Shown: positions 5,998-62,966 of the stretch, one piece after another
Numbering within the stretch: position 1 is the stretch's first letter
Layout of the letters: every line of letters starts with the position of its first letter
DNA from: Paramoeba atlantica
Lineage: Eukaryota; Protista; Discosea
Length of the DNA stretch: 64,000 nt
Direction: 5' to 3'
Assembly (NCBI GenBank): GCA_977017575.1
Contig: CDRNVI010000047.1
Location: 299,952-363,951 of the forward strand
The notes under the pieces: generated by a model
The model's input: only the letters and a program-made list of their open reading frames with translations
What the model was told of the DNA's origin: nothing
The model's database searches: none
Position numbers and translations under genes: made by a program

Positions 5998-6470
5998 TCG
6001 CGTAGTTCGTTTTGTCGTCAAACATAAAAAAATGGCACTGCTTCGAAAGTACCTTTCGGGATAGCATGGTGCGTTCCCAGTCCTGAACTGTTCTCACTGC
6101 TTTCTTTTTTACGTCCTTTGAGTTCCTGTGAAACTTTACGCGATCGACAAAAACTTTGAATCCTACTAAAGGTTGTTGAAATGAAGTGTACCCTCTACAA
6201 AATCTCACCGCATCTCACATCCTCTTCCTTGTCCCCATTTTCCTCCTTCTCTTTGCAAAAATCAACCTTTCAAAAAATAACTTTAAAGTTATGTTTTATT
6301 TTAGTAAAAGTTTCACAAAAAGGATAGAAACAAAAGGATTAAATTCTACAACCCATTTCAAATCAACACAAACCCTACAACACCTAAACCCAAAAAACTC
6401 AACTTTATATCATAAAAAAACCATTTTCTTCACCACCCTTCCCTTCCCTCATCCCTCTCCCCCCCATCCC

Positions 6471-8525
6471 ATGTTCCACCCTCTCCGGCGTCTCCTCCAC
6501 ACCCTCTCCCCCACCCCCACCCCCTCCTCCTTCCTCAAGTCCCCCCCGCGTCCCCTTCTCACCGCCCCCGCCCCCGCCCCCTCCCCCCTTCTCTCGCGCC
6601 CCCACTTCCGCAACCTCGCGGTCATCGCCCACGTCGACCACGGCAAGACGACCCTGGTGGACGCCATGCTGCGCCACAGCGGTACCCTCCGGGAGGCCCG
6701 CAACCGCGTGATGGACAGCAAGGACCAGGAGAGGGAGCGCGGGATCACGATCCTGGCGAAACACACCAGTTTGTTGCTGCCCGCACTCCCGGGGGGGAGG
6801 GGGGAGGGGGGGAGGGGTGTGACGTCGGTTTCGTCGATTTCTTCTTCTTCTTGTTCTTCCGTGAGTCATGTTGAAAATCGAATTAATCTTGTGGATACGC
6901 CTGGACATTTAGATTTTGGTGGGGAAGTTGAACGTGCGCTTCAAATGGTTGAGGGGTTTCTTCTTCTTGTGGATGCTCATGAGGGGGTGAAGCCCGGGAC
7001 ACGGTATGTGTTACGCAAGGCCCTGGACTTGAGGTTAAAGCCGATTGTGGTGTTTAATAAAATGGATATGGAGGACTGTGACATTGCCAAGGCCGAGAAC
7101 CAGGTTCAGGATCTGATTCTGGATTTAGCGACGGATGCGGACCAGCTGGATCTCACCATGCTGTACGGCTCCGGACGTGCAGGGTACATGAATACGACAC
7201 CGGAGGAGAACGGGGGGAAGGGAACTCTCCAACCGCTTTTTGACGCGATTTATGACGTGATCCCACCCCCGACGGACACTGCCAAGGACGCCCCGCTTCG
7301 TATGCTGGTTGGAAATGTGGACGTGCTTCCTGATGGGACACGTCTGGCGATTGGTCGTGTGTTCGCTGGAAGTTTAGTTGTGAAACAAATCATCACCGTT
7401 GTGCTTGGCGACCTTCAAGAAAAAGCCCAAGTCAAGAAAATTGAGGTGTATCGTGGAGTAGAGCGCATTGAGGTCCCGAATGTGGGTTTTGGTGACATCG
7501 CAATCGTCCATCTCACGGAGCCGAAAGGGAAGTCACTCCCTCTTGAAATTGGCGCCACGCTGTGTCACGAGGAACACATCGTACCCTGGCCTTATGTCAA
7601 ACCCGAGGACCCTACCTACACCCTTATTCTCCGCGAGATGGGGGCCTCCTGGAAGGAAACCGAGATTAAGGATAAGGATAAATCACGATTTATGAATCTA
7701 CGCAAATACCTCCAGCGGGAGGCCATGAACAACACCGCACTGCGTCTCGCAGAGCTCCCCGGTACTTCGAATGCGATCCAACTCCAAGGTCGGGGACTTC
7801 TCCATATTGGTGTCCTGCTCGAGGACATGCGCCGTGCCGGGTATGAGTTTGAACTACAGGCCCCGGACACGGTTACAAAGGTAATCAATGGGACCACCCA
7901 TGAACCTTTTGAGCGTCTTTCCCTAGAGTTTAAAGTCGAGCACTTGGCAGCTATCACCCAGCTGCTTACCTCACGACATGCAGAACTCGGGGAAACAGAG
8001 GTGATTCGTGGGGATCGTGTCGTGCAACACTGTGAGATTGCCACACGACTTTTGGGAGATTTAAACCTCCGGGTGCTACGGCTCACGGCGGGGGATGCGG
8101 TTGTGCAAACTGAAGTTGCGGAGTACCGTCCGTGTTTAAAAAACGCCACCACGAGACGAGCCACCCATGCGTTGGTCTCGGTCGATCACGGAACGACCAC
8201 AAACTACGCTTTGAGTTTAAATAAAGAACATGGGGTGTTTTTTGTTGGGTCCGGGACGGCCGTGTTTTATGGTCAAGTGATTGGGGAGACCACAGCGAAA
8301 CAAACCACCGATCTGCCGTTAAATGTTACCAAGGAAAAAGAGCTGACGAATTTCCGTGCGAATGCTATGGATGCTGCGAGACGTACGCAAGTGGGGTTTC
8401 GGTACGAGGAGAAGAGTCTGGAGGAGGCGTTGAGTTGGATTACACCAGAGGAGCTCGTGGTGGTTACCCCGAAGAGCGTACGGATTCGAAAGTGTGTGTT
8501 TGATGGGAAAACGAGGAAAAGGTAA
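6471..8525 (+). CDS. typA: TypA/BipA translational GTPase with organellar-type presequence
   Basis: [39 protein letters not shown] and NKMD motifs, plus the BipA C-terminal [13 protein letters not shown]. Start placed at ATG 6471 ([10 protein letters not shown]) after a polypyrimidine tract; the ORF-track start at 6186 is an AT-rich non-coding extension. Confidence 0.92.
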
Positions 8526-8859
8526 GAAAAGGGGCAGGGAGGCGTGTGTGAGAAAAGGATAGAATATGTAGAGCTTTTTCTTGCATGTTTTCCTTTCTTA
8601 CACACGCGTACAACGTGTGAAGAGTGTTCAAGATGTCGATCTGCAATTACAGATCTGGAATACATCGTTGCGCGTCAAGTTCTGTCTCCATCATGCGTTT
8701 CTCTTTCCTTCTTCCACACACAAAAAGTTTAATCTGTTTCCCCCTTCTACTGCTTTCCTTTCATCTTTTTATTTCTTCATTTTCTCCCTTTCCAACCCTT
8801 CCCGTCCTATCCCTTTTCTTCCTTCCCTACCTTCCCTCCACTCCCCCTCCCATGGTTCC

Positions 8860-9882
8860 ATGATCCCCCTTTTCCTCCTCATCCTCCTCATCTCATTTCC
8901 CACCCTTTCCCCTTCCACACCCACCCCCTTACACGCTCATGACCCCTTGTCGAGCTCCAAACCTCTCTCCAAGACATCCCCTCTCCCAACCCCAACCCCC
9001 CTCCTCGCTTCCTCCCACCCCCTTGAGTCGATGCTCTCCTTGATTGCCCCGATCAAAGCCCCCCACCCTAGCTGGAACGCCTCCCATCCCCTCTCCCACT
9101 GGTACGGTGTGAAATGCAATGAGCTCGGACACCCTCTAGAGCTTCGCTGGGCTGGGCTTTCGGTTTTAGGAGAGCTGAACTGGCGATTCCTGCCCCTATC
9201 GGTGGTGCGAATTAATTTACACCGCACCCACCTTCGGGGGGAGGTCGTGCTCGACCCCTCCCACCTCGCTTTGGAGGCCATAAAGATTGGGGGGAATGAG
9301 TTTACCGGTTCGTTTCCGTTTCAGACACTCCCCCCAGGGCTACGGCATTTAGATATTGGGTTAAATCGTTTTCAAGGCGTTGTGGATCTTAGTGCGCTCC
9401 CTATGGGGTTGGAGTTTTTATATTGTCACCAGAATACTTTTTCCGGAGGAGTGTACTTGAGTTTGCTTCCCGTGTGTCTAAAACGGTTGTTGTTGAACGG
9501 AAATTTGTTTATCGGGCCTGTGGATCTTCAAAGTCTCCCTCCGGCACTTCTCTCTCTTCATTTGCAGTCGAATAGTTTTACGGGAAAGGTAAATCTTCGA
9601 CACCTCCCCTCATGCATAATAGAGATTTTTCTACAGATGAATGCATTTTACGGGCGTCTAGATTTGTCGCTTCTGCCGTCTCGTCTGGAGGTTTTGCGAT
9701 TGGATCATAACCACTTTCGGGGAAGTATTAAGTTAGATTCTCTTCCTCGAAGTCTGAAAAAACTACATGTAGAAGGAAATCGACTTCATGGAAACGTACG
9801 TTTTTCTCAATTTCACTCCAGCCTCATAATTTCTATCTCTTCAAAGGAGAGGTCAAAAACAATGAATTCTAGTTCTTCATAA
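8860..9882 (+). CDS. Secreted/surface LRR protein (340 aa), copy 1
   Basis: Signal peptide MIPLFLLILLISFPTLS, Pro/Ser/Thr linker, N-cap, then about 9 LRRs. Near-identical to 17195-18217. Confidence 0.9.
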   Translation: MIPLFLLILLISFPTLSPSTPTPLHAHDPLSSSKPLSKTSPLPTPTPLLASSHPLESMLSLIAPIKAPHPSWNASHPLSHWYGVKCNELGHPLELRWAGLSVLGELNWRFLPLSVVRINLHRTHLRGEVVLDPSHLALEAIKIGGNEFTGSFPFQTLPPGLRHLDIGLNRFQGVVDLSALPMGLEFLYCHQNTFSGGVYLSLLPVCLKRLLLNGNLFIGPVDLQSLPPALLSLHLQSNSFTGKVNLRHLPSCIIEIFLQMNAFYGRLDLSLLPSRLEVLRLDHNHFRGSIKLDSLPRSLKKLHVEGNRLHGNVRFSQFHSSLIISISSKERSKTMNSSSS

Positions 9883-9892
9883 ACAAATGTTG

Positions 9893-10000
9893 TTTAGGCG
9901 CTTCGTTAAACGCGGTGGATGTTTTCAACTTAGAGGTCACCACTGCTGCGCGCTTCGCGTTGAAAACTACCGCCGCGTTTAGCGAAGGGACTAAAAAGAA
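9893..10000 (-). repeat. Cruciform repeat copy (reverse orientation)
   Basis: Inverted arms cttcgttaaacgcggtgg..ttttcaac / gttgaaaactaccgccgcgtttagcgaag around the reverse-complemented 29-nt spacer. Confidence 0.8.
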
Positions 10001-14158: not shown

Positions 14159-14799
14159 CAGTGCACACAATTATTAGTGTAACAATAATTCGTAAAACAA
14201 AAATTAGTAAATTTTTAATTAGTAAAACATTTTGCAAAATTCTGGTTTTACACCTTACATTTTTTTCTTTTCTTCACCTTACATCTTTTTGTTTCGGAAT
14301 TCTATTTTTTTTTTGCGAAAAGTTTTCAAATTACTATGTCGCACGAAAGCGAGCAAGATTTCTGTGAGCAAGATTTTTATTAATCTTATTTTTTTGGGGT
14401 GTTTCTCTCTCTTGTATTTAAGAGATTTTTTTCATATTTAAGAAAATGCTCATGTAGGGACATTGTATGGGAGGGGGTAAAAGTCAATCCCTTTTTGGGG
14501 GATATTCTTTCTAAGGATTTTCTTTGTAATACGCTTCACTGAAGCCTGACACACTCAGCATGGGGAAGCATGGTCGGGACCTCCTCGCGGTCTTCCCTAG
14601 CGTTACCATTTTGCAGATGGTACTAACGCCGACCTTAGAGGAGACAACCTACTCAAACGACAGAAATACCTTTTCTGTAAAAATTGATTTTATCAAGTTG
14701 GCAAATTTTTGGGGGCAGTGCAAAAATTAGTGAATTTTTAATTAGTAAAACTTTTTTATTATTTTACAATAAAAGTTTTACTAATTTTTGCGAGCACTG
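14159..14799. mobile_element. Probable Tc1/mariner-type non-autonomous element
   Basis: TA|CAGTGC...GCACTG|TA ends with about 19/25 TIR identity and repeated attagtaaaac subterminal motifs. Confidence 0.45.
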
Positions 14800-14884
14800 T
14801 ACCTATTTACGGAATTTCTTAATTACGGTTACTCCCTAATTACGGTTAACCGATTTAAGGTTAAAATCGACGAAATTTTAACCG

Positions 14885-15430
14885 TTAACCGTAATTAAGA
14901 AATTCCGTAATTAAGTAACGCCCGGTTAGCTGGCTAAGCTTTACAACTTGATAGTTTCGTCCGGGATAGGCTTCTTCCAAAAATTTGGTTACGCGTGTCG
15001 TGACTCCATAGGATTCTCGATCCGTTTCAGATAGGTTTTTCCAAAAAGAGTACGCTTTGGCTTTCACGCGCTGCGGAATGCCCACTCTTGTGCGCTTCCG
15101 TTGCGTTCCACCAAACGTTCGCTTTGTGCGTTCACCCGCGCAACGTCGCTTAAAGTTTTCCGCACCGTTTTGGAATTCAGAATCGGAAATATTTTCATCT
15201 TCCGAATCGCTAGAGGTGCTTGACGAAAGTGAGGGATCAGAGTCATCCAAGGGGCCAAAATGATCGCGCTGCTCCACATTATCTCGTTCGGTTGAAGCAT
15301 CGTGTAAAACAGCGGAGTCTAGCCCTGGATCGTCCTCCAGGGTTTCCCATTCATCTTCATCCGGGGGAAGAACAACGCGAGTCCAACTTGCAACTTCCAT
15401 AGCTCTTCGCTCCAAAAATTCGACGGACAT
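14885..15430 (-). CDS. Hypothetical acidic/basic ORF (181 aa), possibly a transposon-derived fragment
   Basis: Open ORF with a D/S-rich tract and a basic segment. It runs into a palindromic AT-rich sequence at 14805-14910. No family recognised. Confidence 0.3.
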   Translation of the reverse strand: MSVEFLERRAMEVASWTRVVLPPDEDEWETLEDDPGLDSAVLHDASTERDNVEQRDHFGPLDDSDPSLSSSTSSDSEDENISDSEFQNGAENFKRRCAGERTKRTFGGTQRKRTRVGIPQRVKAKAYSFWKNLSETDRESYGVTTRVTKFLEEAYPGRNYQVVKLSQLTGRYLITEFLNYG

Positions 15431-15691
15431 TTTTAGAAAAATTTACTAAAACAATAAATTAGGATATTCATCCAATTAGGATATTCATCCACCCCCCGGT
15501 TTAGAATATGTAGAGCTCTTTCTTTCATGTTTTCCTTTCTTACACACGCGTACAACGTGTGAAGAGTGTTCAAGATGTCGATCTGCTATTACAGATCTGG
15601 AATACATCGTTGCGCGTCAAGTTCTGTCTCCATCATGCGTTTTTCTTTCCTTCTTCCACACAAAAAGTTTAATCTGTTTCCCCCTTCTACT

Positions 15692-17082
15692 TGTGGATTG
15701 TCATACTCAGTGCAACACCTTTTTGTCATACTCAGTGCAACAAAAATGAGAAAAATATGGGTGTGTTCCGGATGTCAGGATTTTCGCATACTCAGTGCAA
15801 CACTGTTTTTTCGGTCGGACAGCACCACAAACGGACGCGGGATTGTATGAGCCATGTTAAGAAAGAAACAATGGATTAAGAAAAAAAAAATATGTAAGGA
15901 GAAGAAAAAGGGAGTACCTGGATAATCGATATTGACGGAACAGCATAACGCGTTTCTTTAGTAAAGAGATAAACTTTTTACCTTTACTGTTTTACAACTT
16001 ACGGCTATACAACTTACTGCTTTCATGTATAGTACCGTCTCTTTATAGTAAAATTTGGCCTTCCAAGCTCTTTGGGGAGAACCATTTCAAGCACTTTCGT
16101 GGCCGTTTGTTCAGTTTGTTGGCCGTCTTACTAACTTCGCGCTGTGTCAACTCCTCAAAAGTATCTGACTTGGTGTGATACTGACGGACCAGACCATTCA
16201 TGTTTTCAACGGCCCCCTTTTCCCAGGAATGGTAAGGATGACAAAAGTAAGATTTGCATCCTAACTTCTTGTTGATGGCTTCATGATTGGTGTTTTCAGT
16301 TCCATTGTCATACGTTATGGTATGCGCTTTGTATTTATTTAAGGCTTTCAGCAACTGTGTTTCAACTTCTTTTGACTGCTTGGATTGAAATACACGAAGG
16401 ACAACAAACTTACTCTTTCGTTCACAAAGGGTCAGGATGAAATACCCACTTTTCTTTGCTCCCTCAATTAAATCGGCCTCCCAATCACCATACCGACGTC
16501 GTGTGTTTACTATTTGGGGACGATGATCGATAGAAACCCGGTTTGGAATGGTACTTCGACCATGAATGCGTCGAACATAAGGCCGCCTTCCGCGGATCCG
16601 TAGGCACCTATGAATCTTCCCCCCATTGTCTTTGTCTCGACGAACAAATCGATAGATTGTGGAAGTGGATGGTGAACCTTGTGAGCCGACAACAAGTGTA
16701 TTAGCAACCTGCTCCGGGCTGTGAAGCTTTCGGAGACGGGTCTTTACACTTTTTTCAAGACTGGCTCGAATTAGACGTGGTCTGGTTCCTTTATTAACCA
16801 GTCGTCTCTTGGCAACACGATGGGCACGGCTGGAACGGTATTGCCCACCTCTTTTCCTGTTGCGTGCCAGCTCACGACATACCGTACTTGGGGACTTATC
16901 AATCGATCGGGCAATTTCCCTCTTCGTGGCGCCACTTTCAAACATCGTTTGAATATCTTTGCGATTGTTTTCAGATAATCTTCTGTACTTTGGCATGAAT
17001 GAACTGAATTATGTAGAAATTAGTATATGAAGTGTATTATGTAGAAACTAACCTTTTGTTGCGCTGAGTATGACAATCCACA
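15692..17082 (-). mobile_element. IS30-family insertion sequence, 1391 bp, 26-bp TIRs, 4-bp TSD (TACT)
   Basis: TIRs TGTGGATTGTCATACTCAG(T/C)GCAACA at 15692-15717 and 17057-17082 (25/26 identical). TACT at 15688-91 and 17083-86; the empty site has a single TACT at 8748-51. Confidence 0.95.
16043..16996 (-). CDS. IS30-family DDE transposase (317 aa), intact
   Basis: N-terminal HTH (REIARSIDKSPSTVCRELARN), GDWEADLIEG, TITYDNGTE and YFCHPYHSWEKGAVENMNGLVRQY. All three DDE residues are present. Confidence 0.95.
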   Translation of the reverse strand: MPKYRRLSENNRKDIQTMFESGATKREIARSIDKSPSTVCRELARNRKRGGQYRSSRAHRVAKRRLVNKGTRPRLIRASLEKSVKTRLRKLHSPEQVANTLVVGSQGSPSTSTIYRFVRRDKDNGGKIHRCLRIRGRRPYVRRIHGRSTIPNRVSIDHRPQIVNTRRRYGDWEADLIEGAKKSGYFILTLCERKSKFVVLRVFQSKQSKEVETQLLKALNKYKAHTITYDNGTENTNHEAINKKLGCKSYFCHPYHSWEKGAVENMNGLVRQYHTKSDTFEELTQREVSKTANKLNKRPRKCLKWFSPKSLEGQILL

Positions 17083-17194
17083 TACTGCTTTCCTTTCATT
17101 TTTTTATTTCTTCATTTTCTCCCTTTCCAACCTTTCCCGTCCTATCCCTTTTCTTCCTTCCCTACCTTCCCTCCACTCCCCCTCCCATGGTTCC

Positions 17195-18217
17195 ATGATC
17201 CCCCTTTTCCTCCTCATCCTCCTCATCTCATTTCCCACCCTTTCCCCTTCCACACCCACCCCCTTACACGCTCATGACCCCTTGTCGAGCTCCAAACCTC
17301 TCTCCAAGACATCCCCTCTCCCAACCCCAACCCCCCTCCTCGCTTCCTCCCACCCCCTTGAGTCGATGCTCTCGTTGATTGCCCCGATCAAAGCCCCCCA
17401 CCCTAGCTGGAACGCCTCCCATCCCCTCTCCCACTGGTACGGTGTGAAATGCAATGAGCTCGGACACCCTCTAGAGCTTCGCTGGGCTGGGCTTATGGTT
17501 TTAGGGGAGCTGAACTGGCGATTCCTGCCCCTATCGGTGACGCGAATTAGTTTACAACGCACCCACCTCCGGGGGAAGGTCGTGCTCGACCCCTCCCACC
17601 TCGCTTTGGAGGTCATAAAGATTGGGGGGAATGAGTTTACCGGTTCGTTTCCGTTTCAGACACTCCCCCCAGGGCTACGGCATTTAGATATTGGGTTAAA
17701 TCGTTTTCAAGGCGTTGTGGATCTTAGTGCGCTCCCTATGGGGTTGGAGTTTTTATATTGTCACCAGAATACTTTTTCCGGAGGAGTGTACTTGAGTTTG
17801 CTTCCCGTGTGTCTAAAACGGTTGTTGTTGAACGGAAATTTGTTTATCGGGCCTGTGGATCTTCAAAGTCTCCCTCCGGCACTTCTCTCTCTTCATTTGC
17901 AGTCGAATAGTTTTACGGGAAAGGTAAATCTTCGACACCTCCCCTCATGCATAATAGAGATTTTTCTACAGATGAATGCATTTTACGGGCGTCTAGATTT
18001 GTCGCTTCTGCCGTCTCGTCTGGAGGTTTTGCGATTGGATCATAACCACTTTCGGGGAAGTATTAAGTTAGATTCTCTTCCTCGAAGTCTGAAAAAACTA
18101 CATGTAGAAGGAAATCGACTTCATGGAAACGTGCGTTTCTCTCAGTTTCACTCCAGCCTCATAATTTCTATCTCTTCAAAGGAGAGGTCAAAAACAATGA
18201 ATTCTAGTTCTTCATAA
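17195..18217 (+). CDS. Secreted/surface LRR protein (340 aa), copy 2
   Basis: Six amino-acid differences from 8860-9882, all in the N-cap/first LRR segment. Confidence 0.9.
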   Translation: MIPLFLLILLISFPTLSPSTPTPLHAHDPLSSSKPLSKTSPLPTPTPLLASSHPLESMLSLIAPIKAPHPSWNASHPLSHWYGVKCNELGHPLELRWAGLMVLGELNWRFLPLSVTRISLQRTHLRGKVVLDPSHLALEVIKIGGNEFTGSFPFQTLPPGLRHLDIGLNRFQGVVDLSALPMGLEFLYCHQNTFSGGVYLSLLPVCLKRLLLNGNLFIGPVDLQSLPPALLSLHLQSNSFTGKVNLRHLPSCIIEIFLQMNAFYGRLDLSLLPSRLEVLRLDHNHFRGSIKLDSLPRSLKKLHVEGNRLHGNVRFSQFHSSLIISISSKERSKTMNSSSS

Positions 18218-18691
18218 ACAAATGTTGTTTAGGCGCTTCGTTAAACGCGGTGGATGTTTTCAACTTAGAGGTCACCACTGCTGCGCGCTTCGCGTTGAAA
18301 ACTACCACCGCGTTTAGCGAAGGGACTAAAAAAGAAAATTTGGCCTGGAAAGCTGAAGTGGTAGAGACTCTACCAGGGAAGTGGTAGAGTAGACCGCGGC
18401 GATAATTTTTAACCCCCCTGGGGGTACCCCCCCCTGGTACGCGCGGGAGGGGTCTGACAAGGTCAAAATTTCCGAAATTTTTGGGGTGACCAAAAACAAA
18501 TTGACCCAAAAAAAAGTAAAAAAATTGTTTTTCCAAAATCGACTCCTAAAACGTATTTGGAGACTTTGGGACCTCAGCTACCATTCTACGCCGTTTTTTT
18601 CGACAGATTCGCCTCCTGCACCTACTAGTGAGGCACCCAAAACGGCCCAAAACACGTTACCTTGCACCCCAAGGCCCATCCACATGTCATA

Positions 18692-22094: not shown

Positions 22095-22260
22095 GAAAAA
22101 ACTTTGATGCGATGAATCGTAAGAAAAAACGGTGCTGTGGACGAATTTAAGTCGAAAATTTCTCGAAAGAAAAGTGTTTTATTTCCTTCTCCAACCTTCG
22201 AATCATGAATTCAAAATTTTAAACCAACTTTCACTTCCAAACGTCTTCTTACACACTTAT

Positions 22261-22602
22261 TCAGAAATTTAAGTATCTGTTTCTCTTCTTTTTCCCTTTG
22301 AAGTAAACGCTCGATGCGCGCTTCGCTTCTTCCGTAGTGCTAAAACACACGTGCGCCAGTCCTTTTTTTGATACGATTGTTATGCAATCGATTTCACCAT
22401 ACGAAGCGTAATGCTTGGTAAGGTCTTCTTTAGTCGTAGAGGAGGGAAGGTATTCTATTGTGATTGAGCACTCGTCACGCTCTTCGCGCGCAGAGCGCAA
22501 AACGTGTAGAGATTCTAAGTAATCATCTCTTTTGCGCTTTGTATCTCTTTTCTTGTCGGAAATGTCGTTGCCATTGGTTGATTGATTCTCCGCCGAGGCC
22601 AT
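22261..22602 (-). CDS. Small RRM-domain protein (113 aa) carried at the Helitron 3' end, copy A
   Basis: RNP2-like SITIEYLP, helix TTKEDLTKHYASYGEI and RNP1-like KGLAHVCF, with a basic C-terminus. Confidence 0.75.
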   Translation of the reverse strand: MASAENQSTNGNDISDKKRDTKRKRDDYLESLHVLRSAREERDECSITIEYLPSSTTKEDLTKHYASYGEIDCITIVSKKGLAHVCFSTTEEAKRASSVYFKGKKKRNRYLNF

Positions 22603-23094
22603 AGTAACTTCAAAGAAAGTTTTCAAAAAAATCAAGCTGAGTCTAGAAACATTCAACTTAAAAAGCAATACATGAACGTAGAAGTCTTCTTTTTGAAGGG
22701 CCTGCCCGGAGGGCCCTTCGAGAGGGTGCAGACCCGCTGCCGCGGGCGGTGCTTTACCTCGTGACGTGTAATTTTGAAGGAAACAAGCTTCTGATATCTT
22801 TTTTTGAAGGGCCCGCCCGGAGCGCCCTTCGAGAGGGTACAGGCCCGCTGCCGCGGTGGGTGCTTTTGAAGCAAACAAGCTTCTGAAATTTCGATAAAAA
22901 AAATTGAAAGCAATTTTGACGGAGCGTAATTCTGCAGCTATGATGGAGACTTTTTTTTTTGTTAGAGGGCGCGTGAGCGTTGGGGTCACTCGCACTTCTT
23001 CTGCCGAAGCTGAAGACGCCGGGCTTGTGACCGGTATCAAGCGTGCTTCCCCCCTAGAGAGGTCTTCCTAAGAAGATCGTTTCAATCTAATTTC

Positions 23095-25155
23095 TTAGAA
23101 TTGATAAGTCAAATCGGTAAGCCGATTTGCTTTTTCCATGGCCGGAAATTTAGGCCTATGGTAACCTGAAGTCAGGTGTGTTCCTGGGCGATCTGTGCCC
23201 ATGCCAGGGAGCACTCGAATATCATCGAGGCATTGTGCCCTGGATATTGCTACTGTGAGCTTGGCGAGTTCCGGTCTCTTGGACCACGCCTTATCATTCA
23301 AGTCAAGAATAACACCTTTCTTCACGGTGATACCTTGTACTTTTTGATACGTATAGGCAAATCCCAATTCCACTTGAAAGTTTCCTTAGGAAGCCTTATC
23401 ATGGTGCTGCGCCTTTTTGGCGTAAAATTCTACACCTGACCCCTTCTCAATGCATTGCATAAAAGAAGGGGCTTTTCGTAGATAACGAACACCATCAATA
23501 GTGTCGTATGACAAATCGTCTGACACAAGGTCTCTCATTTCAATCACTGTCCCATTCGCAATTTTCATTGTATAAGGAGCAATGTTCTCGGTGATTACAC
23601 CGGGTGCTCCTTTTACAAATACAGAAAATGCTTCAGGGTGTGTGTCAATGAGTTTACCTTGGACGTTATCGCCTGTCCATGCGAACAATGGGCAATTGTG
23701 ACGTCTGGCAAAATTTCTTGCGATTGCGACATTAATCTTGTGCCGTTCAATATTTGTTCCAACAATGACAATTGCATTGCGGAACTTTTCTTGGTCCTCA
23801 GAGGTAAGAGGTTTTACCAATTGGATGAACTTCTTCAACCCCTCATTGGGAGCTTTTCGAAGAAGACGCAAGATATCTGAAAATACAGTATCTTGTCGTG
23901 CTCGCATTTGCTGTTTGAGTTCAAACACATACGAGACTTGAAAAATATTCTCAAAAATGGGATTATTACCAGGAGAGCTATCTTCTATGGTAAGAGACGC
24001 TCCTTGTACTGGTATCAGCTGATAAAAATCTCCAACAAAGAGCATGTTGATGCCTCCATAGGGAAGCTGCTCATTTCCTTTGATTTGCTGCAGTCTAGTG
24101 TTGATACAGGCAAGGAAACACTTGCTGATCATTGACACTTCGTCGACTATGATTAATCGACATTTCTCATACCTTTGTTGGTATGGTAGAAGGCTACTGC
24201 TTGAAAGATGTTTCAAATTTCTTGCAGTAGCCCCTATCGGTATGCAGAGGGAAGCGTGTATTGTGCAACAGTGCAGTACTGATGCGGCGATCCCAGTGGG
24301 CGCCATTGCAATACATTGGCTTCCCAGTTCTTGCATTATGAAACGGGAAACTAGACTTTGCCCGGTTCCGGGGCCACCGAGCAGAAACATACATTTCCGC
24401 TCGGGGTCTAGTTTCCCGTTTAGTAAATCTTCAATTTGATTTACGCACTGTTTCTGTGCTTGGTTCAGTTCAATGGAATTGTTGTCTTCGCGCAATATGT
24501 AGCTGCGATCGAACGTAATCTCTTCGTATTGATTACTGCGAGCCAGTGGACGATCCTCATTAAAATGAGATCTGTCCACTGGTGCACTTGGCTCAGATTG
24601 AGCCGAAGTTACAAATCGTTCGTTTTGGATCATTTCAGCATAGCGCTCTCCCGCATTTATGACTGTCATTGTCGATGCAAGATCAACATTTTCTTCAGAG
24701 GAGTTCTCAGTAGAACCTCCTAACGCGGCCGTTAAAGCTCGCGTTTGTAGTTCGCAGTATGCATTCTGCTGAACCAATCGCTCTTCATTAACCACTGCAG
24801 TGTTCTGCTGTGCTTCAAGAGCATCTTGAAGATGAGGTTCAACCTCTCGCACTTCAAGCTCATTTTCGTACGCAATGTTGCGTGCTAATCTTGCTTCTTC
24901 CAGAGTGCAAGCATCTTTGCGTCGATACAAATTTGCCGCGTTCTCAGTATTCTTCGAAGCATTTTCAAACCCTTCTAGGGTCATTTCATGGCTCGGTGAG
25001 CCTTTCGTCCATGGGGAAAACAATACCACCATGTGTTTCGCTACTCGAAGCTGGCTTCGAGCTCGTGCCCCAGGTTCTTTTGAAGAACTCAATATGGGAA
25101 AACCTGGTATAGCTGGCGCAGTGTGCAAAGAGCGCAACTGTTGTTCAACAATATA
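23095..25155 (-). pseudogene. PIF1-family (SF1B) helicase portion of RepHel, copy A
   Basis: GGPGTGQS (Walker A Lys changed to Gln), IIVDEVSMI, GGINMLFVGDFYQLIPV, ELKQQMRA and AYTYQKVQG. In-frame TAA at 23386-88. Confidence 0.9.
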
Positions 25156-25439
25156 AAGGCTCAAATTCCGGGAGGCCTTCAATGTCCTCAAAGGCGTATC
25201 TCCCATTAGCACGACGTCCGCGACGACGTCTTCGATTTGTCCCGCACTCAAAATCTGAATCATGATCCGGCTCTTCTTGAGCTAGTTCAGCTCTTTACTT
25301 ATTTACGCTGACAATGCCTGCATAGGAGAAGAACTGCACAATCATGTTCGGTGATCATTAGAGGGGCCTCTACGATACCGTTGTCGAACTCAGAGACTTG
25401 TGACGAATCATCGTCACTGATTTCTAGTTCTGTGTGATC

Positions 25440-27711
25440 TGACTTTTTTGAAAAACATCAGCAGCACATTTGGACACATGTTCCCTGAAATAATCATCCT
25501 TTTCATCAAGAATGATATGTAGTCCTCCGCGATACATCTTTGAGTAGTCGAGCGTTGTAGGGCCGTAAAGCTCCTTACTGATCCTTTGCGCCCACTCGGG
25601 CAGATCAGCGCGCATCGTCGTACCCAAAGACTTCGCGAGACCATCGTGCTCCTTCACAATGTGAATTAATTCGGAGACGTAATGTGGACTAAGATTCGTC
25701 CATAGTACACTATGAAAGTGTAGCGCATCTCTTTTTTGGCATTCTACAACACCAAAAAATGCTCGATGGCGACCAAAGAGGCCTTCAAGAACGTCACATT
25801 CTTTCTTTACCTCATCTACGTTCGACATTCCGTACAATTCGGTAAGAAGAGTACGGATTTGCCGTTTGAAAATTCTAGTGGATCTGACAGGATACCATGG
25901 CACAAGCTCAGACCGCTTGAGAAGGTTGGCCCGCATTTCCTGCATTTTCTCGCTCTCATCATTCGTAAAGATTCTTAAATCTAGAACGTTATCGTTCATG
26001 TTTGGACTCACTGTGATCCAGTAAGTTGGCAGTCCGCATCGCCTGTATAAGGCGTAGATCTGACTTTGTGATGCCTTTCGCTTTGCTAGCGAAAAGGGTA
26101 TCGTTTTTGCGCATACTTGCACAAATGGCAGAAACTTTGTTTCCAGAAGTTTCGCTTCGGAACTGTTTGGGTTCCTTATAGCCTGTTGTACAATGTGATG
26201 GAAAGCATCAGCATTGCAAAAATTCACGAACATCTGTGCATATCTTTGTTATACTTCAGATTTTGCACTACTGCTGATGAGGCTTCGCGGCACCGAAGCA
26301 CATCGTAGCAGTAAAATATGAATCCAGCATTCTTTGCAAATCGGGAATCCGATTGCTCTAGAATTTCCTTGATTTCATATAGTTCAAACGTTGAACCCTT
26401 GAAAGGGTACTTTTGCATCAGCGTCGGAAATGCTCCGAGCAAGATGTTTTCCATGTCGGTATACTCATTGAGTAAACCTTCTTTTTGTTTCAGTTGCATC
26501 GCCACGGCATGCGTAATTTGCGCACCCGCCGGCGCATTGCTTACAGGGTTGTGATCAGTTACAAAAGATCGTGTGATCTCACCGCGAGGATCGCGATGTA
26601 ACGTATCGGAAGCCACTGCTTGGGTGACCATGCTGTTTATGGCGTTTTCACCTTCCTGGGAAACAGATCTATCCCAAAGATGTGAGACAACGTCTCTACA
26701 ATGTTGTTCGGTAACAACGTTGATCTTTCCTTCCTCTTTCAGTTGAGCATACACGGTTATGCTCACAGAGGAAGTTTACCCAGGTGTTCGGAGTCCCTGA
26801 TTTCACCCCGAATATGCCACTCAGCTGTGCAGAACATAGTCTTTGACTACGCTTTATTCGCCGTTCGTTGGCTATCCAAACAATTTGGATGCTCTTAATC
26901 GCGCCCTCGAGATCCGGAACTCTTTCGAGTTGCAAGAGCTCAAGGGTTTCGCGTGCTGTAGCCGTCGCATGTCCAGTGAATTTCGTGTCTGGCCTTAAGG
27001 ATGCGGCATATGCGCCACCTTTCCTATGTACACTGATGATTGTGCAGTGTAAAAACCAAACCAACCAAATCATTCCGGATTGCTCCGGATGGTCACTGGC
27101 AAGCCAGACCCTTCACAGACAGATTTGGAAGTTCCGAGGCCGACGTCCTCTACCAGTTTCCGCTTTTCCAAGGCGGCACCAACGTGCTGTTGCCAACACG
27201 CTGCGTCGACGAACTGTACGTCAACACGGCTTACCCAAGAGGTGTAAGCCCGGTTAGGGAGCTGGTTGCCTGAGGGGAGGGTCCGGGACGGTCCTTCGAG
27301 TACTGGGACTAGTCGGTTCTCAGCCCAGCCTCTTGGAGTGAGGAATATTGCGATGAGCGGGTTTGAACTCGCCGTCTGAGCACCATGTGCTTCAAACTTT
27401 GAATTCTTGCCACTCCACCACCTCCGCTCAGTGTTAAAACACCTTTGGAAGAAGAATCTCTTCTACCAGCGTGGGTGCTGGAAGGCGATTTGTAGAAGGT
27501 TGTTCTACTGTACCTCGGGGAATTCTCCCTTTTTTGTCCATTATTCTTTGATCCTTTGCACAAAGTTGCGCTTCGGGATTCGGAATGTCACTTTCGAGAA
27601 GAAGAAGAAGAAGAAGAAGAAGAAGAAGACACTTTCGAGAAGAATAACTTTAGAAGAATCACAACTTGTGATACGTCTTCTTCTTCTTCGTCGTCGTCGT
27701 TCATTCTCTTT
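25440..27711 (-). pseudogene. Helitron Rep (HUH) region, copy A, frameshifted and SINE-interrupted
   Basis: PTYWITVSPN and VVECQKRDALHFHSVLW motifs (25424-26233). The upstream WV.FLCEHN..Y motif is typical of Helitron2 N-terminal regions. Confidence 0.85.
27057..27428 (-). mobile_element. tRNA-derived SINE-like insertion, 372 bp, 12-bp TSD
   Basis: Absent from the homologous sites at about 41445 and 47063. Flanked by cagtgtaaaaac (27045-56) and cagtgttaaaac (27429-40). The minus-strand head has an A box TGGTGGAGTGG and a B box GTTCAAACC; the tail is tttggttggtttg. Confidence 0.8.
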
Positions 27712-30700
27712 TTGTACCTTTTCATGCACTCTTCTTGAGCTTCCGTACTGACTGAAAAATCTTCCAAAGGAAGACGATCAATGTAGGAACTCTCATAGAA
27801 GTATTTGAGTGCGTCTTTTGGATCGCGCTCAATGTCAAAACGTGTTCGACGTGAGCCATCTCCATTGACTTCGTATGTGTCAAAATTGACAATACGTTTC
27901 GCGATGCAACATCGTTCAAGCCAGCACCGAAGTTCATTGGCTGAAGATTCTTTTCATATTTCGTTTGTGTGAAAGATGGTGTTTTCACACATCTGCATGA
28001 TAGCATATGCTGCACTGTCAATAGTGCTAGCATTCGTCAAATTCGTGACAGTTGCTTGATTCAAACTTGAAACAATTTCGTTTTCAAGAGAGGGACTCGA
28101 AGTAAACGTGTAAACGTTCTTTTCACCCTTCTTTTTCAAGGAAGAAGACGTATCACAACTTGTGATATGTTGATCGTCGTTCATTCTCTTTTTGTAGAAG
28201 AGAAGAAGAAGAGAATTCTCTTCTTGTACCTTTTCATGCACTCTTCTTGAGCTTCCGTACTGACTGAAAAATCTTCCAAAGGAAGACGATCAATGTAGGA
28301 ACTCTCATAGAAGTATTTGAGTGCGTCTTTTGGATTGCGCTCAATGTCAAAACGTGTTCGACGTGAGCCATCTCCATTGACTTCGTATGTGTCAAAATTG
28401 ACAATACGTTTCGCGATGCAACATCGTTCAAGCCAGTACCGAAGTTCATTGGCTGAAGATTCTTTGCATATTTCGTTTGTGTGAAAGATGGTATTTTCAC
28501 GCATCTGCATGGTAGCATATGCTGCACTGTCAATAGTGCTAGCATTCGTCAAATTCGTGACAGTTGCTTGATTCAAAATTGAAACAATTTCGTTTTCAAG
28601 AGAGGGACTCGAAGTAAACGTGTAAACGTTCTTTTCACCCTTCTTTTTCAAGGAAGAAGACGTATCACAACTTGTGATATGTTGATCGTCGTTCATTCTC
28701 TTTTTGTAGAAGAGAAGAAGAAGAGAATTCTCTTCTTGTACCTTTTCATGCACTCTTCTTGAGCTTCCGTACTGACTGAGAAATCTTCCAAAGGAAGACG
28801 ATCAATGTAGGAACTCTCATAGAAGTATTTGAGTGCGTCTTTTTGATTGCGCTCAATGTCAAAACATGTTCGACGTGAGCCATCTCCATTGACTTCGTAT
28901 GTGTCAAAATTGACAATACGTTTCGCGATGCAACATCGTTCAAGCCAGTACCGAAGTTCATTGGCTGAAGATTCTTTGCATATTTCGTTTGTGTGAAAGA
29001 TGGTATTTTCACGCATCTGCATGGTAGCATATGCTGCACTGTCAATAGTGCTAGCATTCGTCAAATTCGTGACAGTTGCTTGATTCAAAATTGAAACAAT
29101 TTCGTTTTCAAGAGAGGGACTCGAAGTAAACGTGTAAACGTTCTTTTCACCCTTCTTTTTCAAGGAAGAAGACGTATCACAACTTGTGATATGTTGATCG
29201 TCGTTCATTCTCTTTTTGTAGAAGAGAAGAAGAAGAGAATCCTCTTCTTGTACCTTTTCATGCACTCTTCTTGAGCTTCCGTACTGACTGAGAAATCTTC
29301 CAAAGGAAGACGATCAATGTAGGAACTCTCATAGAAGTATTTGAGTGCGTCTTTTGGATTGCGCTCAATGTCAAAACGTGTTCGACGTGAGCCATCTCCA
29401 TTGACTTCGTATGTGTCAAAATTGACAATACGTTTCGCGATGCAACATCGTTCAAGCCAGTACCGAAGTTCATTGGCTGAAGATTCTTTGCATATTTCGT
29501 TTGTGTGAAAGATGGTATTTTCACGCATCTGCATGGTAGCATATGCTGCACTGTCAATAGTGCTAGCATTCGTCAAATTCGTGACAGTTGCTTGATTCAA
29601 AATTGAAACAATTTCGTTTTCAAGAGAGGGACTCGAAGTAAACGTGTAAACGTTCTTTTCACCCTTCTTTTTCAAGGAAGAAGACGTATCACAACTTGTG
29701 ATATGTTGATCGTCGTTCATTCTCTTTTTGTAGAAGAGAAGAAGAAGAGAATTCTCTTCTTGTACCTTTTCATGCACTCTTCTTGAGCTTCCGTACTGAC
29801 TGAAAAATCTTCCAAAGGAAGACGATCAATGTAGGAACTCTCATAGAAGTATTTGAGTGCGTCTTTTGGATTGCGCTCAATGTCAAAACGTGTTCGACGT
29901 GAGCCATCTCCATTGACTTCGTATGTGTCAAAATTGACAATACGTTTCGCGATGCAACATCGTTCAAGCCAGCACCGAAGTTCATTGGCTGAAGATTCTT
30001 TTCATATTTCGTTTGTGTGAAAGATGGTGTTTTCACACATCTGCATGATAGCATATGCTGCACTGTCAATAGTGCTAGCATTCGTCAAATTCGTGACAGT
30101 TGCTTGATTCAAACTTGAAACAATTTCGTTTTCAAGAGAGGGACTCGAAGTAAACGTGTAAACGTTCTTTTCACCCTTCTTTTTCAAGGAAGAAGACGTA
30201 TCACAACTTGTGATATGTTGATCGTCGTTCATTCTCTTTTTGTAGAAGAGAAGAAGAAGAGAATCCTCTTCTTGTACCTTTTCATGCACTCTTCTTGAGC
30301 TTCCGTACTGACTGAGAAATCTTCCAAAGGAAGACGATCAATGTAGGAACTCTCATAGAAGTATTTGAGTGCGTCTTTTTGATTGCGCTCAATGTCAAAA
30401 CATGTTCGACGTGAGCCATCTCCATTGACTTCGTATGTGTCAAAATTGACAATACGTTTCGCGATGCAACATCGTTCAAGCCAGCACCGAAGTTCATTGG
30501 CTGAAGATTCTTTTCATATTTCGTTTGTGTGAAAGATGGTATTTTCACGCATCTGCATGATAGCATATGTTGCACTGTCAATAGTGCTAGCATTCGTCAA
30601 ATTCGTGACAGTTGCTTGATTCAAAATTGAAACAATTTCGTTTTCAAGAGAGGGACTCGAAGTAAACGTGTAAACGTTCTTTTCACCCTTCTTTTTCAAG

Positions 30701-33700
30701 GAAGAAGACGTATCACAACTTGTGATATGTTGATCGTCGTTCATTCTCTTTTTGTAGAAGAGAAGAAGAAGAGAATTCTCTTCTTGTACCTTTTCATGCA
30801 CTCTTCTTGAGCTTCCGTACTGACTGAGAAATCTTCCAAAGGAAGACGATCAATGGAGGAACTCTCATAGAAGTATTTGAGTGCGTCTTTTGGATTGCGC
30901 TCAATGTCAAAACGTGTTCGACGTGAGCCATCTCCATTGACTTCGTATGTGTCAAAATTGACAATACGTTTCGCGATGCAACATCGTTCAAGCCAGTACC
31001 GAAGTTCATTGGCTGAAGATTCTTTGCATATTTCGTTTGTGTGAAAGATGGTATTTTCACGCATCTGCATGGTAGCATATGCTGCACTGTCAATAGTGCT
31101 AGCATTCGTCAAATTCGTGACAGTTGCTTGATTCAAAATTGAAACAATTTCGTTTTCAAGAGAGGGACTCGAAGTAAACGTGTAAACGTTCTTTTCACCC
31201 TTCTTTTTCAAGGAAGAAGACGTATCACAACTTGTGATATGTTGATCGTCGTTCATTCTCTTTTTGTAGAAGAGAAGAAGAAGAGAATTCTCTTCTTGTA
31301 CCTTTTCATGCACTCTTCTTGAGCTTCCGTACTGACTGAGAAATCTTCCAAAGGAAGACGATCAATGGAGGAACTCTCATAGAAGTATTTGAGTGCGTCT
31401 TTTGGATTGCGCTCAATGTCAAAACATGTTCGACGTGAGCCATCTCCATTGACTTCGTATGTGTCAAAATTGACAATACGTTTCGCGATGCAGCATCGTT
31501 CAAGCCAGCACCGAAGTTCATTGGCTGAAGATTCTTTTCATATTTCGTTTGTGTGAAAGATGGTGTTTTCACACATCTGCATGATAGCATATGCTGCACT
31601 GTCAATAGTGCTAGCATTCGTCAAATTCGTGACAGTTGCTTGATTCAAAATTGAAACAATTTCGTTTTCAAGAGAGGGACTCGAAGTAAACGTGTAAACG
31701 TTCTTTTCACCCTTCTTTTTCAAGGAAGAAGACGTATCACAACTTGTGATATGTTGATCGTCGTTCATTCTCTTTTTGTAGAAGAGAAGAAGAAGAGAAT
31801 TCTCTTCTTGTACCTTTTCATGCACTCTTCTTGAGCTTCCGTACTGACTGAAAAATCTTCCAAAGGAAGACGATCAATGTAGGAACTCTCATAGAAGTAT
31901 TTGAGTGCGTCTTTTGGATCGCGCTCAATGTCAAAACGTGTTCGACGTGAGCCATCTCCATTGACTTCGTATGTGTCAAAATTGACAATACGTTTCGCGA
32001 TGCAACATCGTTCAAGCCAGCACCGAAGTTCATTGGCTGAAGATTCTTTGCATATTTCGTTTGTGTGAAAGATGGTGTTTTCACACATCTGCATGATAGC
32101 ATATGCTGCACTGTCAATAGTGCTAGCATTCGTCAAATTCGTGACAGTTGCTTGATTCAAACTTGAAACAATTTCGTTTTCAAGAGAGGGACTCGAAGTA
32201 AACGTGTAAACGTTCTTTTCACCCTTCTTTTTCAAGGAAGAAGACGTATCACAACTTGTGATATGTTGATCGTCGTTCATTCTCTTTTTGTAGAAGAGAA
32301 GAAGAAGAGAATCCTCTTCTTGTACCTTTTCATGCACTCTTCTTGAGCTTCCGTACTGACTGAGAAATCTTCCAAAGGAAGACGATCAATGTAGGAACTC
32401 TCATAGAAGTATTTGAGTGCGTCTTTTGGATTGCGCTCAATGTCAAAACATGTTCGACGTGAGCCATCTCCATTGACTTCGTATGTGTCAAAATTGACAA
32501 TACGTTTCGCGATGCAACATCGTTCAAGCCAGTACCGAAGTTCATTGGCTGAAGATTCTTTGCATATTTCGTTTGTGTGAAAGATGGTATTTTCACGCAT
32601 CTGCATGGTAGCATATGCTGCACTGTCAATAGTGCTAGCATTCGTCAAATTCGTGACAGTTGCTTGATTCAAAATTGAAACAATTTCGTTTTCAAGAGAG
32701 GGACTCGAAGTAAACGTGTAAACGTTCTTTTCACCCTTCTTTTTCAAGGAAGAAGACGTATCACAACTTGTGATATGTTGATCGTCGTTCATTCTCTTTT
32801 TGTAGAAGAGAAGAAGAAGAGAATCCTCTTCTTGTACCTTTTCATGCACTCTTCTTGAGCTTCCGTACTGACTGAGAAATCTTCCAAAGGAAGACGATCA
32901 ATGTAGGAACTCTCATAGAAGTATTTGAGTGCGTCTTTTTGATTGCGCTCAATGTCAAAACATGTTCGACGTGAGCCATCTCCATTGACTTCGTATGTGT
33001 CAAAATTGACAATACGTTTCGCGATGCAACATCGTTCAAGCCAGCACCGAAGTTCATTGGCTGAAGATTCTTTTCATATTTCGTTTGTGTGAAAGATGGT
33101 ATTTTCACGCATCTGCATGATAGCATATGCTGCACTGTCAATAGTGCTAGCATTCGTCAAATTCGTGACAGTTGCTTGATTCAAAATTGAAACAATTTCG
33201 TTTTCAAGAGAGGGACTCGAAGTAAACGTGTAAACGTTCTTTTCACCCTTCTTTTTCAAGGAAGAAGACGTATCACAACTTGTGATATGTTGATCGTCGT
33301 TCATTCTCTTTTTGTAGAAGAGAAGAAGAAGAGAATTCTCTTCTTGTACCTTTTCATGCACTCTTCTTGAGCTTCCGTACTGACTGAAAAATCTTCCAAA
33401 GGAAGACGATCAATGTAGGAACTCTCATAGAAGTATTTGAGTGCGTCTTTTGGATTGCGCTCAATGTCAAAACGTGTTCGACGTGAGCCATCTCCATTGA
33501 CTTCGTATGTGTCAAAATTGACAATACGTTTCGCGATGCAACATCGTTCAAGCCAGTACCGAAGTTCATTGGCTGAAGATTCTTTGCATATTTCGTTTGT
33601 GTGAAAGATGGTATTTTCACGCATCTGCATGGTAGCATATGCTGCACTGTCAATAGTGCTAGCATTCGTCAAATTCGTGACAGTTGCTTGATTCAAAATT

Positions 33701-34752
33701 GAAACAATTTCGTTTTCAAGAGAGGGACTCGAAGTAAACGTGTAAACGTTCTTTTCACCCTTCTTTTTCAAGGAAGAAGACGTATCACAACTTGTGATAT
33801 GTTGATCGTCGTTCATTCTCTTTTTGTAGAAGAGAAGAAGAAGAGAATTCTCTTCTTGTACCTTTTCATGCACTCTTCTTGAGCTTCCGTACTGACTGAG
33901 AAATCTTCCAAAGGAAGACGATCAATGGAGGAACTCTCATAGAAGTATTTGAGTGCGTCTTTTGGATTGCGCTCAATGTCAAAACATGTTCGACGTGAGC
34001 CATCTCCATTGACTTCGTATGTGTCAAAATTGACAATACGTTTCGCGATGCAGCATCGTTCAAGCCAGCACCGAAGTTCATTGGCTGAAGATTCTTTTCA
34101 TATTTCGTTTGTGTGAAAGATGGTGTTTTCACACATCTGCATGATAGCATATGCTGCACTGTCAATAGTGCTAGCATTCGTCAAATTCGTGACAGTTGCT
34201 TGATTCAAAATTGAAACAATTTCGTTTTCAAGAGAGGGACTCGAAGTAAACGTGTAAACGTTCTTTTCACCCTTCTTTTTCAAGGAAGAAGACGTATCAC
34301 AACTTGTGATATGTTGATCGTCGTTCATTCTCTTTTTGTAGAAGAGAAGAAGAAGAGAATTCTCTTCTTGTACCTTTTCATGCACTCTTCTTGAGCTTCC
34401 GTACTGACTGAAAAATCTTCCAAAGGAAGACGATCAATGTAGGAACTCTCATAGAAGTATTTGAGTGCGTCTTTTGGATTGCGCTCAATGTCAAAACGTG
34501 TTCGACGTGAGCCATCTCCATTGACTTCGTATGTGTCAAAATTGACAATACGTTTCGCGATGCAACATCGTTCAAGCCAGTACCGAAGTTCATTGGCTGA
34601 AGATTCTTTGCATATTTCGTTTGTGTGAAAGATGGTATTTTCACGCATCTGCATGGTAGCATATGCTGCACTGTCAATAGTGCTAGCATTCGTCATATTC
34701 GTGACAGTTGCTTGATTCAAAATTGAAACAATTTCGTTTTCAAGAGAGGGAC
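27712..34752 (-). repeat. Tandem array of a 512-bp unit (13.75 copies) derived from the 5' part of the Helitron RepHel ORF
   Basis: Equivalent ORF boundaries recur exactly every 512 bp (27722, 28234 ... 34378). The unit is homologous to single-copy sequence at 40790-41260 and 46496-46880. Confidence 0.95.
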
Positions 34753-50195: not shown

Positions 50196-50702
50196 ACATT
50201 GTGAAGGAGCACGATGGTCTCGCGAAGTCTTTGGGTACGACGATGCTCGCTGATCTGCCCGAGTGGGCGCAAAGGATCAGTAAGGAGCTTTACGGCCCTA
50301 CAACGCTCGACTACTCAAAGATGTATCGCGGAGGACTACATATCATTCTTGATGAAAAGGATGATTATTTCAGGGAACATGTGTCCAAATGTGCTGCTGA
50401 TGTTTTTCAAAAAAGTCAGATCACACAGAACTAGAAATCAGTGACGATGATTCGTCACAAGTCTCTGAGTTCGACAACGGTATCGTAGAGGCCCCTCTAA
50501 TGATCACCGAACATGATTGTGCAGTTCTTCTCCTATGCAGGCATTGTCAGCGTAAATAAGTAAAGAGCTGAACTAGCTCAAGAAGAGCCGGATCATGATT
50601 CAGATTTTGAGTGCGGGACAAATCGAAGACGTCGTCGCGGACGTCGTGCTAATGGGAGATACGCCTTTGAGGACATTGAAGGCCTCCCGGAATTTGAGCC
50701 TT

Positions 50703-58088: not shown

Positions 58089-58092
58089 ATTT

Positions 58093-60525: not shown

Positions 60526-60534
60526 AAGTAATAT

Positions 60535-62961: not shown

Positions 62962-62966
62962 CTATT

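Follow-up and report, generated by a model that had tools for sequence, protein, structure and literature searches.

Can a transposase of the bacterial IS30 family work on a eukaryotic chromosome? The question is raised by a 1391-bp element in a 64,000-nt stretch of Paramoeba atlantica DNA (contig CDRNVI010000047.1, positions 299,952 to 363,951 of the forward strand). We call the whole stretch the window and use its own numbering throughout. An earlier note, made from the sequence alone, had described the element as an intact bacterial-type insertion sequence (IS) that had transposed into a eukaryotic-looking locus. Very probably, a family of DNA transposons with a transposase of the bacterial IS30 family resides in the nuclear genome of a protist, and the element is one of its young copies.

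The IS30-type element occupies positions 15692-17082. It is bracketed by two copies of TACT (15688-15691 and 17083-17086), which are assigned as the target-site duplication on the basis that the same 4 nt precede and follow the element and that an empty paralogous site holds only one. The terminal inverted repeats are 26 nt long and 25/26 complementary (96%). The repeat at the downstream end of the transposase gene (15692-15717, plus strand) starts with TGTGGATT and includes a repeat core at 15700-15717, while the repeat at the upstream end of the gene (17057-17082, minus strand) holds the single core remaining there. In a gapless register, the terminal repeat is identical at 18/26 positions to the left inverted repeat (IRL) of IS30A from E. 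coli K-12 (NC_000913.3). Both the 26-bp repeats of IS30 pattern and the TACT duplication that the earlier note had reported are therefore present. Two further cores of ~18-20 nt, putative transposase binding sites, follow on the plus strand at 15725-15742 (no mismatches) and 15785-15802 (two mismatches). The 18-nt core occurs four times in the window, every time within the element, with 0.04 occurrences expected by chance. The three cores at the downstream end lie in a 351-bp non-coding region 3′ of the transposase stop codon (15692-16042, minus strand), which also contains a pyrimidine-rich run on the transposase strand at ~15880-15915. Two 24-nt direct repeats (16999-17050, minus strand) lie in the 86-nt leader 5′ of the transposase ATG, and the pair is also found in an intact sister copy, L005.

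The transposase gene (16043-16996, minus strand) is intact and encodes 317 aa, with Pfam matches to HTH_38 (1.2e-13, residues 3-46) and rve (1.3e-08, residues 168-257), each exceeding its curated threshold. D175, D230, and E264 form its catalytic triad, in which 33 residues separate the second D from the E, and they align with the DDE columns of InsI1 from E. coli IS30 and of 24 relatives, in agreement with the complete transposase with intact DDE that had been proposed. The protein is 98% identical to P0122, the product of L005, and 35% identical to the E. coli IS30 transposase. The GC content at third codon positions (GC3) is 0.43 in the transposase gene and 0.41-0.58 in neighbouring host-side genes; among Verrucomicrobial relatives it is 0.71 in one and 0.41 in another, and given this spread base composition is weak evidence on origin.

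The window also preserves a version of the locus without the element. A paralogous segment at 8560-10000 (plus strand), comprising an intergenic region and a leucine-rich repeat (LRR) gene, is 98.3% identical to 15502-15691 joined to 17087-18336, and its target site at 8748-8751 is empty, with a single TACT. When the element and one TACT were removed in silico, 15502-18336 aligned to 8560-10000 over 1442 bp at 98.3% identity, gapless at the junction. The A of the CCACA that ends the element is absent from the empty site and thus belongs to the element, which fixes the element ends and sets the duplication at 4 bp. The LRR gene next to the insertion lies at 17195-18217 (plus strand), and it was its pyrimidine-rich upstream region that received the element, 109 bp before the ATG. 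Insertion after the segmental duplication is supported as the simplest reading of the clean duplication and the exact empty paralogue. The divergences fit this order, because the window copy differs from its closest sister, L005, at 14 of 1386 aligned bases (~1.0%), compared to 1.7% between the two LRR paralogues. The ~1% divergence between copies also suggests that the insertion is recent. Thus, the earlier proposals of an empty site ~7 kb upstream and of a transposition at this site after the duplication both stand, and the window copy is direct sequence evidence for the action of a bacterial-family transposase on a eukaryotic chromosome.

These observations bear directly on the possibility of an assembly chimera or contamination, in which an element from a co-living bacterium was joined to eukaryotic DNA by the assembler. 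Such an origin would explain why the transposase family is bacterial, and the window does end in a Bacteroidota-type gene cluster (56.3-64 kb). A chimera, however, would not give exact repeat ends together with a 4-bp duplication of a site that is single in a 98.3% identical paralogue. It is also at odds with eight copies at eight eukaryote-like sites, several with their own duplications, with a short-read contig from another sample that crosses the left junction, and with bacterial relatives that all lie at ≤50% amino acid identity. We therefore consider a chimera very unlikely.

The flanks point the same way, as the element is embedded in eukaryotic DNA on both sides. To its left lie a haem peroxidase gene (1061-2494), whose nearest Atlas clusters are 100% eukaryotic, and a gene for a 779-aa TypA/BipA (6186-8525), whose nearest clusters are eukaryotic organellar TypA of 650-750 aa. 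On the right, Helitron Rep (Helitron_like_N) and PIF1 helicase genes occur several times, together with a satellite of 512 bp and numerous dispersed repeats. Little of the sequence is coding, and long pyrimidine tracts precede the LRR genes. The earlier note had allowed that the flanks might prove bacterial; the peroxidase, the 779-aa BipA, and the Helitron genes are eukaryotic.

The junctions were examined in public sequencing data. Four runs, from one study, contain the stretch, and their contigs (Logan) were placed on window positions 14700-18200. A 148-nt contig of run X2 covers 15594-15741 and crosses the left junction with no gap and a single difference, and hence carries the flank variants of the filled copy rather than those of the paralogue; run X2 comes from a different sample than the run that best matches the stretch. 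Loose contig ends at 15692 and 15687 (runs X2 and X1) lead into the flanks of sister copies L089 and L091, and from those at 17077, present in three runs, it is clear that other copies have this end in a longer form. A 'skips 1395' joint in run X1 was considered as an empty allele and rejected, since the contig has 12 differences diagnostic of the paralogue. Logan depth ratios would place the element several-fold above its flanks, although these depths are not copy numbers and were not relied on.

A cloning-host artefact was also considered, whereby protist DNA, once cloned, would have received an IS from the laboratory strain. Such hops into clones are known for the IS30 family in E. coli. 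Nevertheless, neither 5,426 complete genomes of E. coli nor 72,556 plasmids (PLSDB) gave a megablast match to the window element, the transposase of E. coli IS30 is only distantly similar (35%, as above), and the element is multi-copy across independent runs and in a separate ENA assembly. The near-identical laboratory-strain IS that the earlier note had warned of was thus found neither in the E. coli genomes nor in the plasmids; within the reach of the two collections, this excludes an origin in a cloning host, and the probability of such an origin is negligible.

We then asked whether the window copy stands alone. The gene collection searched held no exact match to its transposase, and the sister copies were found via cluster members and fragments. 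The best protein matches all lie in ENA assembly ERZ24900291, at 93, 90, 61, and 56% identity. This assembly carries seven further copies of the same subfamily (subfamily A) at different sites, 94-99% identical, which makes at least eight with the window copy. L005 (1445 bp, 99.0% identical to the window copy) has an intact 317-aa open reading frame (ORF) and a perfect ACGT/ACGT duplication. L089 (1447 bp, 96.4% to L005) and L001 (~1441 bp, 97.3% to the window copy) have broken ORFs and are flanked by TCA/TCA and ACT/ACT, respectively. L002 (94% to the window copy) has an internal deletion and flanks that agree at 2/3 bases. L006 (~98% to the window copy) is truncated at one end and carries a nested insert, and L090 is a 455-bp fragment (97.6% to L005). 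L091 (L091:2861-3689, 829 bp, ~99% to L005) is flanked by AGT/AGT and is without positions 298-910 of the full copy, making it a candidate non-autonomous element that may have been moved in trans. Subfamily B is represented by L003 and L007 (1425 bp, 98% identical to each other), with 315-aa ORFs and duplications of CCT and GAT. Together with a subfamily C, there are three divergent subfamilies, with 56-61% amino acid identity to each other. The hallmarks of a class II DNA transposon are therefore present: dispersed copies, terminal repeats, duplications, and an internally deleted derivative, L091. The count of further copies and duplications that had been suggested as a check thus returned at least eight subfamily-A copies and two further subfamilies, with duplications of 3-4 bp.

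The sister copies also allow us to weigh a scenario in which a bacterial IS arrived recently with bacterial DNA and then spread by segmental duplication only, with no transposition in the eukaryote. The region is rich in segmental duplications, and Gilbert and Cordaux (2013) explained most eukaryotic IS607 copies in this way (PMC3673617). In contrast, the flanks of the sister copies are unalike, with similarity ending exactly at the repeat ends, and their 3-4-bp duplications differ. The sole segmental duplicate available, the paralogue at 8560-10000, is empty. Furthermore, subfamilies at 56-61% amino acid identity with matching, co-evolved end repeats imply long residence. Spread by duplication only is consequently extremely unlikely, and we retain the reading of a resident transposon family.

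The sister copies lie on contigs of 10-197 kb, and their neighbours include RVT_1, zf-RVT, DDE_3, and Merlin-type DDE genes, a phage-integrase-type recombinase, LRR genes, and a weak Nup84 match. The insert within L006 is 565 bp long (L006:5620-6184), has the 8-bp direct repeat TTGACTGC on both sides, and looks like a nested insertion of another element, of which no second copy was found among the loci examined. An exact search of JGI metagenomes with the 23-nt terminal repeat gave 0 matches. The 18-nt core gave nine single matches in unrelated JGI contigs, which were taken as chance because real copies would have several cores.

Comparison of the copies shows that the ends of the family differ from those of a simple IS. 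In L005, a ~20-nt core with a consensus close to TTGTCATACTCAGTGCAACA occurs three times at either end, in inverted orientation. The window copy has all three at the downstream-of-gene end (cores starting at 15700, 15725, and 15785) and one at the upstream-of-gene end, where L006 has two and L002 has one, of different origin. As these three copies retain fewer units at this end, the core arrays repeatedly lose units. The window copy is 54 bp shorter than L005 at the upstream end (one core compared to three), and its near-perfect 26-bp repeat is a consequence of this deletion. The core of subfamily B is a distinct version, present several times per end, and subfamily C has at least two at one end. 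Internal repeats were also looked for in one bacterial relative, the Verrucomicrobial element L025, where a lone pair of 25-nt repeats is present, internal cores are missing, and the region 3′ of the transposase gene, without repeated cores, spans ~200 bp compared to 351 bp in the window copy. Multi-site ends are thus a common trait of the subfamilies in the protist, and the one bacterial element analysed lacks them. The label 'bacterial-type' given by the earlier note is therefore too simple, since the ends have been rebuilt with three transposase-site-like repeats each.

The duplications are 4 bp for the window copy and L005, and 3 bp for L091, L089, L001, and both subfamily-B copies, while the Verrucomicrobial relatives have 3-bp duplications at 6/6 copies. 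The family thus makes duplications of 3-4 bp, with 3 bp usual and 4 bp a variant. A uniform 3-bp duplication was considered, and fails for the window copy and L005 unless the extra base is assigned to the element. Duplications within the 2-3 bp usual for IS30 are accordingly the rule in the family, and that of the window copy is one base longer.

To place the transposase among its relatives, protein collections were searched broadly. Among 5.8 billion proteins there was no bacterial protein with >50% identity to the window transposase; after the ERZ24900291 matches, the next were IS30 transposases from metagenomes, none exceeding 50%. When 1.84 billion cluster representatives were searched exhaustively with HMMER, fragments of the same family were alone in exceeding 50%, and all other matches were at ≤45%. 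Bacteria and archaea, scanned with one genome for each species, gave 572 relatives, of which the best reach 43-47% identity and are mostly Verrucomicrobiota; the best-matching groups are Verrucomicrobiales, Akkermansiaceae, Puniceicoccaceae, and Opitutales. In a maximum-likelihood tree of 109 rows, rooted on E. coli IS30 and including 103 relatives, the eukaryote-side clade lies within bacterial IS30 diversity; the tree comes from a quick search, for which the tool warns of long branches meeting. All five transposases of the eukaryote side group together (SH-aLRT 100) on a stem of 0.64, with no bacterial sequence among them, and their sister is a clade of 60 rows that are mostly Verrucomicrobiota (SH-aLRT 100 for the pair). 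The phylogeny that the earlier note had called for thus yields a single eukaryote-side clade next to a mostly Verrucomicrobiota IS30 group. The topology agrees with a single acquisition from which the subfamilies later diverged, and the direction, though not proven by it, would be from bacteria. Several independent transfers from related bacteria would also produce divergent subfamilies: these are as distant from each other (56-61%) as some bacterial clades are, and the donor pool is undersampled. Against this, the clade of five contains no bacterial member among the 103 relatives, and subfamilies A and B have multi-repeat ends that are absent in the one bacterial relative checked, with at least two repeats at one end in C. 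Several transfers are therefore unlikely, and a single acquisition with later diversification is preferred.

In the bacterial group, a Verrucomicrobiae metagenome-assembled genome (MAG) carries four 100%-identical 1214-bp IS30-family copies with different 3-bp duplications on one 4.2-Mb contig (L025-L028, CAWCAA010000002.1), and a second MAG holds two more copies of this element at ~90%. This looks like an active bacterial IS and is our nearest bacterial comparator.

The remainder of the window has features of its own. A tandem array of ~512-bp units with 98-99% identity (27703-34752) is kin to sequence beside Helitron copies at 40790-41223 and 46496-46841. Units that bear Helitron Rep and PIF1 genes have been duplicated on a large scale, in inverted and direct orientation, with 99.5-99.6% identity (22097-25662 and 50196-53761; 40878-44475 and 46496-50092), which attests to very recent segmental duplication or Helitron activity. 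At the right end, six back-to-back minus-strand ORFs fill 56319-63986 with gaps of 0-9 bp. The first ORF of the cluster has weak CarboxypepD_reg/MG2 matches. Of the five that follow it, one lies at 61741-62961; among the other four, which were scanned, three (58093-59304, 59305-60525, and 60535-61740) match DUF4249, and the one at 62967-63986 has no Pfam match. The Atlas clusters closest to DUF4249 are 100% Bacteria, most of them Bacteroidota. GC falls to 0.38-0.41 in this cluster, which abuts a Helitron-related repeat at 55292-55859. Rfam and tRNA scans gave no matches in the window or in ten sister loci, and a search with a kinetoplastid spliced-leader pattern, which says little, gave no match in the window.

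Several observations weigh against a resident, transposing family of bacterial descent. For the Bacteroidota-type cluster at 56.3-64 kb, which lies 39 kb from the element, the options are a bacterial island gained by transfer or a chimeric assembly join. Among the contigs listed, none was seen to bridge the right junction, so that the spanning of both flanks for which the earlier note had wanted long reads was obtained here, with short-read contigs, on the left side only; read support for the insertion is thus partial. All public runs come from one study, and the best-matching run is possibly the source sample of the window. No RNA run among the public runs contains the element. Between the two intact genes, those of the window copy and L005, there are 8 coding differences (2 synonymous and 6 non-synonymous), and the dN/dS of ~0.9, from only 8 differences, carries no selection signal, which is consistent with the drift expected after insertion. 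Finally, the eukaryote-side clade is sister to the bacterial clade rather than nested in it, on a long stem, so the donor and the direction of transfer would follow from the bacterial distribution of the IS30 family. With respect to the proposal of a horizontally acquired lineage active in a protist nucleus, the resident family, its young copies, their duplications, and the single clade all agree with it, whereas activity itself is suggested by the young copies and the duplications.

Taking these points together, we propose the following sequence of events. Most likely, a single transfer from bacteria brought the lineage into the protist, and its nearest relatives are now found among Verrucomicrobiota IS30 elements. 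It would then have diversified into at least three subfamilies, while its ends changed to three ~20-bp repeats each. After duplication of the LRR gene, the window copy would have inserted into the pyrimidine-rich region 109 bp 5′ of one of the two genes, and repair of a staggered cut would have left the 4-bp TACT duplication. The 54 bp lost at the upstream end of the transposase gene, with two of the three repeats, may have gone before or after insertion. By homology, HTH_38 is predicted to recognise the repeat cores and the DD(33)E domain to cleave and join the ends. The most likely route would be copy-out-paste-in through a circle or abutted ends, as used by IS30-family elements (PMC5821093). 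No abutted-end joint was found among the contigs placed on the locus, although contigs cannot show rare circles. In a bolder form, to which we give about even odds, the family would found a superfamily, 'IS30EU', in which a bacterial IS30 lineage in a euglenozoan-type protist is still mobile, has three-site ends, and may carry circle-mediated copy-out-paste-in into the nucleus. To our knowledge, no circle-mediated copy-out-paste-in DDE route is known for cellular cut-and-paste transposons in a eukaryotic nucleus. If 'IS30EU' is correct, the window copy and its empty site would be a direct record of such a transposition event.

A full-text literature search found no description of a eukaryotic IS30 lineage or superfamily, in line with what the earlier note had stated, and one paper names IS30 only as a distant relative of integrases (PMC2836005). 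The resident IS30-derived family is thus undescribed in the literature searched. In the one systematic survey, Gilbert and Cordaux (2013) queried all IS families in 430 eukaryote genomes and recovered only IS607; in the eukaryotic IS607 copies no terminal repeats or duplications were found, so that transposition in eukaryotes could not be concluded (PMC3673617). Working transfers of transposons from bacteria to eukaryotes are very rare on record, and the family offers a natural experiment on the survival of a bacterial IS in a nucleus, with changes in end architecture, duplication length, and composition. Transposition could be assayed with the intact candidate genes of the window copy and L005, and the family may also yield a new compact transposon tool for use in kinetoplastid-type organisms. 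In kinetoplastids, Merlin is the only DNA transposon group reported, with none in trypanosomatids, according to Lopes et al. 2021 as cited in PMC12278014; if the host is kinetoplastid-related, the family would extend the DNA-transposon repertoire given there beyond Merlin.

Among known systems, the element most resembles the bacterial IS30 family (IS30 of E. coli, ISApl1, IS4351, and, in this analysis, uncharacterised members from Verrucomicrobiota), with which it has in common a single HTH_38 + rve DD(33)E gene, 26-bp repeats, short duplications, and a length of 1.2-1.45 kb. Unlike these, the protist family resides in eukaryotic DNA, has three cores per end compared to one in the relative checked, makes duplications of 3-4 bp where IS30 and ISApl1 make 2-bp duplications (PMC5821093), and encodes a transposase with ≤50% identity to any bacterial one found. 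The IS607-like sequences offer a second parallel, as a prokaryotic IS family present in protist and fungal genomes, with some copies intact, and read as prokaryote-to-eukaryote transfer (PMC3673617). IS607 uses a serine recombinase, however, while the IS30-type copy has exact ends, duplications, and an empty site. The Merlin elements of free-living kinetoplastids (IS1016/IS1595-like) differ in their transposase, which is not of IS30 type, and Merlin-type DDE genes adjoin sister copies of our element. The family is also comparable to the eukaryotic superfamilies whose DDE transposase is common with a bacterial IS family, i.e. Tc1/mariner-IS630, Merlin-IS1016, MULE-IS256, PIF/Harbinger-IS5, ISL2EU, and Ginger/IS3-like. 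Like the eukaryotic cut-and-paste superfamilies, it has terminal repeats, fixed short duplications, and both autonomous and internally deleted copies. Its several putative binding sites per end recall the IR/DR (inverted repeat/direct repeat) ends of Tc1 elements of the Sleeping Beauty type. In contrast to these superfamilies, which are ancient, widespread, and far from their bacterial cousins, the IS30-type lineage is seen in one organism or assembly and remains at 45-50% identity to bacterial IS30 transposases.

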